Assembly: GCA_000388065.2 (NCBI GenBank)
Contig: KB932207.1
DNA: 52,934 nt
Source of the DNA: Fonticula alba ATCC 38817
Taxonomy: Eukaryota > Protista > Nucleariida
Reading direction: 5' to 3' (one strand)
Shown here: positions 6,068 to 25,189 of the stretch, in pieces
How the letters are laid out: each line of letters starts with the position of its first letter
Position numbering within the stretch: the first letter of the stretch is position 1
The notes under the pieces: generated by a model
The model's database searches: none
What the model saw: only the letters and a program-made list of their open reading frames with translations
What the model was told of the DNA's origin: nothing
Program-made: the position numbers and the translations under genes

Positions 6068-6532
6068 GTGCCGGGCTCGGTCTCGCAGATCACCACGGGG
6101 CCCGGCTCCCGGATGGATGCGCGTGTTGATGGAGGAGCGGTGAAGGCAGCCGGAGGAGCGGAATTCCACGTGCCAGGAAAAGAGGGGGGGGGGGGGGGGG
6201 GGAAAGGCAGCAAGCAGCGGCGGGGATGAGACAGGAGAGGGGGCAGAAGGGGGGCGGGGGCGGGGGGGGGAGGGGAGGGATGTGAGGTGCCTTGGGTACC
6301 ACCGTGTCGGCATGTGGGGGCGGCCGGTGCCGGAAAACCCCCCTCGTCCTCGGCACTCTCCGGGCCCCCATCCGCGGGCAAGCGCGCGACCGGGGATTGG
6401 AGCCATGAGAGGATCGCGCCGATCCCGTGCGCGCCTTGGAGTCATATGATCCTGCTAATCTGCGACACGTGTCCGCGCGCTCCACCGCTCGCACCACGTT
6501 TAGGGGCCGGGCGTGCGCATGTGTGCCTGCCA

Positions 6533-6565
<33 letters not shown>

Positions 6566-6825
6566 CATCCGCATCCTTGGAGCGTTGGCCCAGTCTATGC
6601 TGTGCTGCGCCCGGCCGCCATCCGGGGCGGCCAGAAGGATGCCAGGTCTCACCGAAGAGACTCCCATGTGAGAGCACCGGCCCGGAGATCGGGGCGTCCG
6701 GACAGAGATCCTCCTGTCCCCCTCCCACCACCTGCCTCTCTCTCCCTCCCTCTCTCTCTTTCTCTCCCCCTCTCTCTCCTTCTTCCTTCCACTCCCCCCC
6801 CCCCACCCTCTCCTGGCTCCGGAAT

Positions 6826-7153
6826 ATGTTCTCTCGCACTGTATCTCGCGTCCTTCTGCGTGCTGGCCCGCCTCTGCGCGCCCAGACCGCCCGCATTCCG
6901 ATGGCTCTGGCTCAGCCTGTTGTGCGTCTGCCCTGCCATCATGGCTCGCGTGGGTCACCTCGACCCCCCCTCGCCCGGCTCTCCCCACAGCTCGTCCGCT
7001 TCTCTGACACCCCCCTATCGTCTCATCCCGATCTTGACATCCCAGGAGTCGGCCTCTGCCCGTGGTGTTGGTGCGCCCGCCTCTGTGTCTGCCTCCCCCT
7101 CGCTGTGGCTCAACATCATGTTCACCGCCCATCCCCGCCCCGCCCTCTCTCTA

Positions 7154-7185
<32 letters not shown>

Positions 7186-8242
7186 TCTGCCTTCTGCTTC
7201 ACTTCTCGCCCGGACGCAGCCCGCATGTACTCGCAGGAGGCTGGCGCTGCTGCCACCGCCTCCCGCAGCGCTACGTGCGACCCCTCCCCCTCGCCGGCCC
7301 ATGCCCTCGGCCGCGGCCCCCCACTTACCATCCCACCCCCTCCCCATCCAGTGCTACCCACCGTAAGGCCATGCAGGAGCGCATTGCCAAGGACCGCATG
7401 AAGAAGCGGTGCGTGTCATCTCGGCGGCTCGACACCTTTTTCCTTCCCTCCTTCTCCCTCTCCCTTTGGTCTAACTCTCCAGGACCTTGCTTCCCCCCGC
7501 CCCTTCCCGCCCTCCACCCCTGCACGAAAGGATCATCATGGCGGCCGTGGGTGTCGTCGGTCTTGCTGGCGCGACGCACCTGTTTTTCCAGCGCTTCGGC
7601 GCCCAGCTGGCCGTCTATGTGACCCCAACGCAGCTTCTCGGCGAGGAGATCGATGACCCGTCGCTGCTGCATGCCTTCCTCGAGCCGGGGCAGGTGACCA
7701 TCAATCCCCCCTCGGCGGATGTCCTCCAATCGATGCCGGTCATTCGCGTGGGCGGCATGGTCAAGCCCGGGTCCTTCCGGTCGCTGGACTACATGCACCA
7801 TTGTGTGTTCATCCTGACGGATTTGATGAACGATGTGGCCGTCATCTACCGCGGTGATGCCATGCTGCCGGATCTCTTCAAGGAGGGCCAGAGTGTCGTG
7901 GTGGAGGGCCACTTCGACCGGGAGGCCATGCTGTTCCGCAGTAACCTCCTGATCGCCAAGCATGACGAGAACTACGTGTCCAAGGACATCGCCGAGCTCA
8001 TGGAGCAGACCCGGCAGAAGATGATGCGCATCGAGGAGCTCAAGGCTGCCGAGACCGCCGCCCGGGCCGACGCGCTGGTGGCCGCCAACCGCCTGGAGAA
8101 CCCGGCCATCGAGTCGCAGCAACTCCCGGCCCTGGACATGGCCACGCTCCGGTCCTCTCCGGCTGTCGGGAGTGAGGGCGAGCCCGGCTCCGAGCAGCAG
8201 GCCACCTCCTCTCCGTCCGAGGAGGAGAAGGCTGGCAAGTGA
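6826..8242 (+). CDS. ccmE: Cytochrome c maturation heme chaperone CcmE with predicted mitochondrial presequence; model join(6826..6921,[6991..6993 optional],7046..7070,7220..7274,7352..7408,7531..8242), ~314 aa
   Basis: Diagnostic CcmE motifs: MKKRR followed by a hydrophobic anchor (IIMAAVGVVGLAGATHLFF), YVTPTQL, IRVGGMVKPGS, YRGDAMLPDLFKEGQSVVVEG, and LIAKHDENY with the heme-binding His at 7961-7963 and Tyr at 7973-7975. The N-terminal exon MFSRTVSRVLLRAGPPLRAQTAR is Arg/Ser-rich with no acidic residues. The 5' exon chain is phase-consistent but less certain than the core. Confidence 0.9.
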
Positions 8243-8656
8243 GCAAAGGAGACACGGGCAGGGCCCCTCGGGGGGGGGGGGGCCTTTTTTCTGCCCCCCG
8301 CCCCAGCCCGCCAGATCGACCAAGCCATCTGCCGCCGGAACAACCACCAGTGCGCTGATATGTAGCCATCTCCCGCACGTGACTGGGACTTTTCTTCCCG
8401 ACCAATAGACTTTCAACAAATGTATCGCCCGGGCGTGTCTTGCCCCGCCCCCGCGCGCCCCCACACGTACATACACACAGGCCCCAGCCCCGCCCCGAAC
8501 CGGGCATCTCCCCCCCCCCTTCTAGAACGGATGAATTGCTTCCGCACTCTCGGCCACCACCGCCCCCGGGCCGCGGGGCTAGGCGGGACCCGCCGATTGC
8601 CGGTGTTGACAGATCCGCGCTCTCTCGGGCCGCCCCCCTCCATGCGAAATGCCCAT

Positions 8657-8658
<2 letters not shown>

Positions 8659-8713
<55 letters not shown>

Positions 8714-23380: not shown

Positions 23381-25189
23381 NNNNNNNNNNNNNNNNNNNN
23401 NNNNNNNNNNNNNNNNNNNNNNNNNNNNNNNNNNNNNNNNNNNNNNNNNNNNNNNNNNNNNNNNNNNNNNNNNNNNNNNNNNNNNNNNNNNNNNNNNNNN
23501 NNNNNNNNNNNNNNNNNNNNNNNNNNNNNNNNNNNNNNNNNNNNNNNNNNNNNNNNNNNNNNNNNNNNNNNNNNNNNNNNNNNNNNNNNNNNNNNNNNNN
23601 NNNNNNNNNNNNNNNNNNNNNNNNNNNNNNNNNNNNNNNNNNNNNNNNNNNNNNNNNNNNNNNNNNNNNNNNNNNNNNNNNNNNNNNNNNNNNNNNNNNN
23701 NNNNNNNNNNNNNNNNNNNNNNNNNNNNNNNNNNNNNNNNNNNNNNNNNNNNNNNNNNNNNNNNNNNNNNNNNNNNNNNNNNNNNNNNNNNNNNNNNNNN
23801 NNNNNNNNNNNNNNNNNNNNNNNNNNNNNNNNNNNNNNNNNNNNNNNNNNNNNNNNNNNNNNNNNNNNNNNNNNNNNNNNNNNNNNNNNNNNNNNNNNNN
23901 NNNNNNNNNNNNNNNNNNNNNNNNNNNNNNNNNNNNNNNNNNNNNNNNNNNNNNNNNCCCCCCCCCTCCCCAGCCTCAGAAGGGGGCGTGGGCGCCGCCT
24001 TGACGGCGAGCCCCCAATGCCGAGCCTTCGGCCTCCCCCCGCCATGCAGCCGGACTGGAGGACAGTCTGTGGACCTGGGCCGCGGCCCCTTTCTTGTCGG
24101 TCAATCCTGGGCACTTCCCCCCGCTCACCCCGTATTCCCGTCCTCCACCGACCCCCAAAGTGCGTCTTGGGAATGTGACACGCCTTCCACCTTGGGCCAC
24201 TCTCAGGTACGCGCGATTTACGCGCGGGCACCTGCGCGCCCCCTGAGAGAGGGCAGGCCCAGGGATCAGGGGAAGGGCTCAGGGAGAAGGGCAGACAATA
24301 AAGAAGTGGAATGCCCTCCCCCAGCCACTCGGGGACAGGCCGCCCTGCAAGTCGGCCGGTGTCCTGGGGACAGAGGGGCATGCTGCCGCGCGCGCGCGCG
24401 CGCGCGCGCGCGCGCGCGCAAGAGGAGGAGCGGAGGTCGGGCGCAGGACACGGGCACACACACGGGCGCCGGCCCAATGGGCCTGTTCATTGGAATCGGC
24501 AGGGGCAGCGGGTCCGTCGGCAGGAGCACTCCAGTCTTCTCACGCTACTTTGCCAGGAACGAGAGCCCCTGTAATGCGAGGGCCGAACCCCTGTCAAGGC
24601 CGTGCCAACGGTCCCGCGGCTCGTCTCCCGGCCATCTTGACCACTCGCGCCCGCTCCCCGCACTTGTGCCTGGGCGTGTGTGTGTGTGTGTGTCTGTGTG
24701 TGTCTGTGTGTGTCTGTGTACATGCATGTGTGCGTGTGCATGTGTGTTTGTGTATTGTGCGCGCGTGTATGGCCAGGGGGAGAAGACAAACAAACCGACA
24801 GCCGTGTGGACAGAGGGGGGGGGGAAGCGCCGCATGTGCGGTGGCATGTGCGAAGGGGGGACAAATTGCATTTTCCCCGCGTGCAGAACCAAATGGCAGC
24901 ACCAGACCTGGCCCGAGAACTGGGGCCGGGCTTCGTGCAAGACAAGGGGAAGCAACCATCACCGGCTCTGTTCTTGGAACATGTGGGCAAGGTCGGCGGG
25001 CTGCGAGCCGGCACGGTCGCGCCGACTAAAAAAAAAAGCGATCCCGGCGGCGGTTGGTCAGTTTGGGCAGAGCACGTACGGTCAGAAGCAGCAGGGGAGG
25101 AGAGGGGAGGGGAGGGGAGGGGGGAGAGACAGGAGGAGACATAGTGAAGGGAGCGGGGGGCCCCTGCCCGGGGCCCATTGGCAGAGGAC

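Follow-up and report, generated by a model that had tools for sequence, protein, structure and literature searches.

In animals and fungi, HCCS (System III) matures cytochromes c, and a lineage usually has either System I or System III but not both. What role, then, could a gene for CcmE, the heme carrier of the bacterial-type System I (Ccm), have in Fonticula alba, a relative of fungi that resembles a slime mold and belongs to the order Rotosphaerida of the Opisthokonta in the NCBI taxonomy? We analyzed a window of 52,934 nucleotides from a nuclear scaffold of this organism (KB932207.1; 2,157,034 bp), in which the CcmE gene, locus tag H696_04562, extends on the plus strand from the ATG at position 6826 to the stop codon at 8240-8242. 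Positions below are those of the window, and all gene features lie on the plus strand. We conclude, with a probability of about 0.8, that H696_04562 encodes a vertically inherited mitochondrial heme chaperone, CcmE, that forms part of System I in Fonticula.

The preliminary description of this DNA had assigned it to an opisthokont-like genome, and this assignment holds: in addition to the scaffold and its taxonomy, the translated open reading frame is 100% identical to F. alba KCV69147.1 and KCV69148.1. NCBI lists two products for the locus, one of 314 amino acids (KCV69147.1/XP_009496718.1) and a 272-amino-acid "variant," both named "hypothetical protein"; the corresponding UniRef100_A0A058Z6I9 has already been labeled automatically as "Cytochrome c-type biogenesis protein CcmE." The called genes that neighbor CcmE are eukaryotic and encode a G-patch/GCFC protein, an HSP70-family protein, an aldolase, and an RRM protein. 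The GC content of the CcmE gene, ∼66%, is the same as that of its flanks. CA/GT microsatellites flank or interrupt the gene (6528-6565, 7166-7186, and 8655-8700), and long CT-rich polypyrimidine tracts occupy 6700-6815, with the tract at 6724-6789 directly upstream of the transcript start. An Rfam scan of the window returned no matches, and an apparent collapse of GC content (0 to 12%) at 22 to 24 kb was rejected as a feature; it is an assembly gap, a run of N at ∼23400-23950.

The gene model comprises five exons and four introns, and the five-exon translation is exactly the 314-residue NCBI protein. Exon 1 (6826-6921) carries the start codon and encodes residues 1 to 32 of a presequence-like leader. 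It is followed by a 25-nucleotide mini-exon (exon 2, 7046-7070), which encodes residues 33 to 41 (ESASARGV and the first base of the codon for A41). Exon 3 (7220-7274) contains the end of the leader, with R42-M43-Y44|S45, and the start of the mature part; exon 4 (7352-7408) encodes a basic stretch (HRKAMQERIAKDRMKKR) on the predicted matrix side of the membrane anchor; and exon 5 (7531-8242) encodes the anchor, a linker, the OB-fold, the heme-binding tail, and a C-terminal extension, ending with the stop codon. The introns are 124, 149, 77, and 122 nucleotides long, and every one reads GTGCG...AG. The mini-exon thus lies, as a coding segment, within the presequence region between the 124- and 149-nucleotide introns. 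The donor pentamer GTGCG is shared by all four introns (at 6922, 7071, 7275, and 7409), a regularity that points to a strong, GC-rich consensus for local donor sites in Fonticula.

Four RNA runs of a 2012 study yielded contigs whose joints were mapped across 7190-8250; these reveal that the gene is transcribed and spliced. The joint 7274>7352 was found in all four runs and that at 7407/8>7530/1 was also recovered, both with GT..AG borders; the contigs cover 7531-8250 without interruption and match exon 5 without differences. Every run also has a loose end of 136 to 140 nucleotides, which precedes position 7219/7220 and reads CCTGTT|GAGTCGGCCTCTGCCCGTGGTGTT. Here, exon 1 (ending at 6921) is joined to the 25-nucleotide mini-exon, as read from the loose-end sequence itself rather than from mapped joints. 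The length of the loose end places the transcript start ∼16 to 20 nucleotides upstream of the ATG at 6826, so these transcripts encode the presequence-bearing form. The preliminary description was correct that an Arg-rich leader is spliced to CcmE, but its splicing scheme missed the mini-exon; the four-exon, three-intron model that it drew, in which 6826-6949 runs directly into 7220, keeps the frame but disagrees with the RNA contigs. The 272-residue "variant" starts at M43 (7225), two residues ahead of the predicted presequence cleavage point, and such a product would therefore lack the targeting leader. It may be an annotation by-product, as the RNA contigs analyzed here all contain the upstream exons.

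The protein belongs to the CcmE family by sequence and by predicted fold. The open reading frame at 7487-8242 matched the Pfam CcmE model PF03100 with 73 bits (gathering cutoff, 24.6; E value, 2.7e-20) over its residues 82 to 165, and solved CcmE chains 1j6q, 1sr3, and 8ce8_E were matched at E values of ∼1e-14, with 28 to 39% identity over the fold. An AlphaFold2 model of residues 70 to 250, built from a 71-sequence alignment (mean pLDDT, 87), consists of a long helix (model residues 2 to 34), a five-stranded barrel, and a C-terminal helix. When this model was compared to the PDB with Foldseek, CcmE entries 8ce8_E, 1sr3, 1lm0, 1j6q, and 2kct made up five of the six best matches (ranks 1 to 4 and 6), with TM scores by target of 0.62 to 0.74. 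The OB-fold β-barrel, which includes PDLFKEGQS, spans approximately residues 147 to 219 (7736-7954), as delimited by Pfam, the five AlphaFold2 strands, and Foldseek.

The barrel is followed by the AKHDENY motif, residues 220 to 226 (7955-7975), which aligns to the heme-binding site of 1j6q and 1sr3. His222 (7961-7963) is aligned to His130 of E. coli CcmE, the residue that binds heme covalently in that protein, and Tyr226 to its axial ligand Tyr134, both roles being established for E. coli CcmE. The His and Tyr of the motif are invariant across 222 aligned CcmEs, and the PDLFxEG motif is intact in Fonticula. A set of 65 short CcmEs of bacterial size has 35 positions that are conserved in at least 80% of its members. 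The Fonticula protein keeps 29 of these positions, including H222, D223, E224, and Y226; this count is at the low end of the range of 28 to 35 observed in the 65 sequences themselves (median, 34). None of the NCBIfam CcmE equivalog cutoffs was reached (best score, 92 bits against a cutoff of 152; e.g., NF009731), which marks the protein as a divergent member of the family rather than a close bacterial equivalent. Judged by its sequence, the Fonticula protein is a divergent eukaryotic CcmE and not a near copy of any bacterial subgroup.

Outside the conserved core, the protein has several additional parts. The leader (residues 1 to 32) contains five Arg and no acidic residues and has a hydrophobic moment of 0.8 over residues 4 to 14, and R42-M43-Y44|S45, as read from the sequence, fits an R-3-type processing motif. 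From this composition and motif only, the leader is predicted to be a mitochondrial presequence, with a putative cleavage site near R42-M43-Y44|S45. Residues 45 to 78 are basic (nine Lys plus Arg) and lead to a single transmembrane anchor at residues 79 to 100 (7532-7597), the sole strongly hydrophobic segment of the 314-residue protein; the highest Kyte-Doolittle window (2.04) is at residue 79, and the segment is helical in the AlphaFold2 model. Pfam, the PDB alignment, and Kyte-Doolittle hydropathy thus confirm what had been proposed from the letters of the DNA: a complete CcmE with an N-terminal membrane anchor and the AKHDENY heme-attachment motif, in which H222 and Y226 are kept in alignment with the E. 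coli and Shewanella proteins. A lineage-specific linker between the anchor and the OB-fold (approximately residues 115 to 146; 7640-7735; pLDDT, 67 to 70) is missing from all other aligned CcmEs, eukaryotic and bacterial alike. The C-terminal extension of ∼84 residues (231 to 314; 7988-8239) is helical at first (AlphaFold2 helix at model residues 160 to 180) and ends in a tail that is acidic and rich in Ser; in the alignment, the extension is missing from short bacterial CcmEs.

To which CcmEs is this protein related? An exhaustive HMMER search of 1.84 billion representative sequences recovered 1,698 relatives, the best with an E value of 1e-17 and 44% identity, and no relative with more than 50% identity was found among these representatives. 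The top single-sequence matches came from metagenomes and are short CcmEs of bacterial size. With a profile built from eukaryote-length CcmEs, Capsaspora owczarzaki CAOG_09148 (368 amino acids) was recovered at an E value of 2.7e-72, and bacterial sequences reached only ∼1e-43. A search for long eukaryotic CcmEs with the full 314-residue protein yielded no additional named eukaryote, and the labeling of 20 representatives brought in no more than Galdieria, one aberrant model from Vigna, and metagenomic sequences. The Vigna model, a V. angularis "CcmE" (KAG2409032.1), consists of repeated partial CcmE segments without HDENY and was excluded from the analyses; its locus is probably misannotated or rearranged. 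We also found a 319-residue CcmE, very similar to that of Capsaspora, on a 1513-bp environmental or transcriptome contig in ENA, which suggests that a further filasterean-like organism keeps System I.

The phylogenetic tree was inferred from 77 bacterial CcmEs from named genomes and six eukaryotic CcmEs: those of Fonticula and Capsaspora, the Capsaspora-like ENA sequence, two from Galdieria, and one EukProt transcript. The six eukaryotic sequences formed a supported clade (95/81). At the split that separates Alphaproteobacteria from other bacteria (93/92), this clade fell on the alphaproteobacterial side. When the other eukaryotes were omitted, Fonticula was again placed on the alphaproteobacterial side (83/90), indicating that this placement is not due only to attraction between long eukaryotic branches. 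Two residues point in the same direction: Lys229 is present in all six eukaryotes, at a position where 27 of 32 Alphaproteobacteria have Lys or Arg and where Pro is found in 40 of the 45 named bacteria from other groups, and Ser199 is present in five of the six eukaryotes, in place of the Gly found in most bacteria. The terminal branch of Fonticula is very long (2.49 versus a median of 0.33). A clade of Fonticula and Capsaspora is absent from the best tree but was not rejected by an AU test (P = 0.28); neither was the grouping of Fonticula with Beta- and Gammaproteobacteria and other nonalphaproteobacterial lineages (P = 0.14). An intron position shared with Capsaspora could not serve as a test of descent because the Capsaspora CcmE gene is intronless. 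The preliminary description had proposed an ancestral mitochondrial origin and regarded nesting within a nonalphaproteobacterial clade as evidence against it. The best tree instead has the eukaryotic clade on the alphaproteobacterial side, and the clade, its position, and Lys229 and Ser199 favor the proposed origin; with a branch this long and AU tests that reject neither alternative, the proposal stands in part.

These findings are consistent with the following role. In Fonticula, CcmE would be a component of the System I pathway inherited from the mitochondrial ancestor. The Arg-rich leader would direct import into the mitochondrion and would be cut near R42-M43-Y44|S45. The helix would anchor the protein in the inner membrane; from what is established for the bacterial protein and for plant CCME, the N terminus is expected on the matrix side and the OB-fold on the side of the intermembrane space. 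His222 would take heme covalently from a CcmC-type partner, and CcmE would then pass it to a CcmF/CcmH synthase, which would join heme to the CxxCH motifs of cytochromes c and c1. Judging from CcmE alone, System I has probably persisted in the fungal branch of the group that unites animals and fungi.

A gene typical of bacteria in an organism that is cultured on bacteria could come from a contaminant or from a misassembled bacterial fragment. The chance of this is negligible here: the gene is inside a 2.16-Mb scaffold, between eukaryotic genes and with a GC content equal to that of its flanks; it has no close bacterial relative; and its four GT..AG introns are removed in the RNA contigs. The spliced transcripts refute contamination outright, in agreement with the preliminary description, which had considered it unlikely for a nuclear, intron-bearing gene. 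It is very unlikely, on the same and on phylogenetic grounds, that Fonticula acquired CcmE secondarily, by horizontal transfer from a bacterium or another eukaryote, and that introns and leader were gained later. Transfer would fit the bacterial-size metagenomic CcmEs among the top matches, the lack of Fonticula-Capsaspora monophyly in the best tree, and the AU test that leaves a position with nonalphaproteobacteria standing. The best tree, however, unites all six eukaryotes, the alphaproteobacterial position is kept when the other eukaryotes are removed, and a Fonticula-Capsaspora clade survives the AU test. Lys229, a signature of eukaryotes and Alphaproteobacteria, and the eukaryote-typical Ser199 are both present, and four introns and host-like GC content argue against a transfer that is recent.

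If the gene was inherited vertically, it could still be an orphan: HCCS would mature the cytochromes c of Fonticula, and CcmE would be a leftover of System I, slowly decaying or kept for another mitochondrial heme job. The very long branch and the low scores against curated equivalog models would be expected of such a relic, as would the lineage-specific insertion and the long C-terminal tail. Yet the reading frame is open, transcripts are made with correct splicing of all four introns, and the heme-binding His and Tyr and PDLFxEG are intact; moreover, CcmE is not known to have any function outside System I. In favor of an orphan, a review credits the mtDNA of the related Nuclearia simplex with a gene set of the fungal type together with rps11 and rps12 and names no ccm genes in it (PMC7194472); this review also runs counter to the mention, in the preliminary description, of ccm genes in some nucleariid mtDNAs. 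Overall, we consider an orphan CcmE quite improbable. That Fonticula has both a complete, working System I and HCCS, as a living two-system intermediate, appears unlikely, too. If true, Systems I and III would have operated together over a long period in the opisthokont ancestor, and such an intermediate would explain why System I is patchy on both the animal side (Capsaspora and Sphaerothecum) and the fungal side (Fonticula) while animals and fungi use HCCS. The reading that we favor remains that of a vertically inherited CcmE serving System I.

How much of this is new? Variation between Systems I and III in Opisthokonta is already documented in the literature. Both Capsaspora owczarzaki and Sphaerothecum destruens have ccmC and ccmF in their mtDNA (PMC7194472, PMC7027106). 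Fonticula is included in a figure of a survey of ccm and heme-lyase distribution (PMC10809612), and our literature search found no paper linking Fonticula with CcmE or ccmF. The preliminary description was right that a genuine nuclear CcmE exists in this opisthokont but overstated its novelty, as opisthokont System I had been published. Also known already are nuclear CcmEs, the usual arrangement among eukaryotes with System I, in plants (PMC10879542) and in Capsaspora, and the CcmE name in UniRef. The new element is only the presence of CcmE in a holomycotan, with no new mechanism or kind of system. Published cases were restricted to the animal side, in the mtDNAs of Capsaspora and Sphaerothecum, and a System I component is now found on the fungal (Holomycota) side, which would date the loss of System I in Holomycota after the Fonticula split. 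Should the remaining parts of the pathway also be present, System I would still have been in use in the common ancestors of Opisthokonta and of Holomycota, and HCCS would either have replaced it repeatedly and independently or have existed alongside it. As a culturable organism with a sequenced genome, Fonticula could serve for testing the coexistence or replacement of System I and HCCS.

The closest known counterpart is CAOG_09148 of Capsaspora owczarzaki, likewise a nuclear CcmE of an opisthokont. The two proteins have the same order of parts, namely, a long N-terminal extension, a basic stretch, a transmembrane anchor, the OB-fold, AKHDENY, and a helical C-terminal extension. In the tree alignment, the Capsaspora protein has the highest identity to that of Fonticula (37%), and both are in the same supported eukaryotic clade. 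They differ in that Capsaspora is a holozoan, on the animal side, and its gene is intronless, whereas Fonticula is a holomycotan, on the fungal side, and its gene has four introns; the Fonticula protein also has ∼30 extra residues in the linker that follows its anchor, and its branch is far longer. CAOG_09148 (on KE346376.1), which NCBI names only "hypothetical protein," has ∼190 residues before the membrane anchor, far above the usual length of a presequence.

Plant CCME has an import presequence; it is held by its anchor in the inner membrane, on the side of the intermembrane space, and forms a covalent bond with heme. It is encoded in the nucleus, as is Fonticula CcmE, and CCMB, CCMC, and CCMF of plants are usually encoded in the mitochondrion (PMC10879542). 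Our comparison with plant CCME of the Arabidopsis AtCCME type draws on the literature and on the red algal CcmEs of Galdieria, rather than on an aligned plant CCME. Bacterial CcmEs, represented by those of E. coli and Shewanella (1sr3, 1j6q/1lm0, and chain E of 8ce8), share with the Fonticula protein the N-terminal anchor, the OB-fold, and a flexible tail that carries the equivalents of His130 and Tyr134. Unlike Fonticula CcmE, they are only ∼140 to 160 residues long, lack a leader, and have their genes in ccm operons; beyond this bacterial core, Fonticula CcmE has a 78-residue N-terminal region, the linker insertion, and the 84-residue C-terminal extension.
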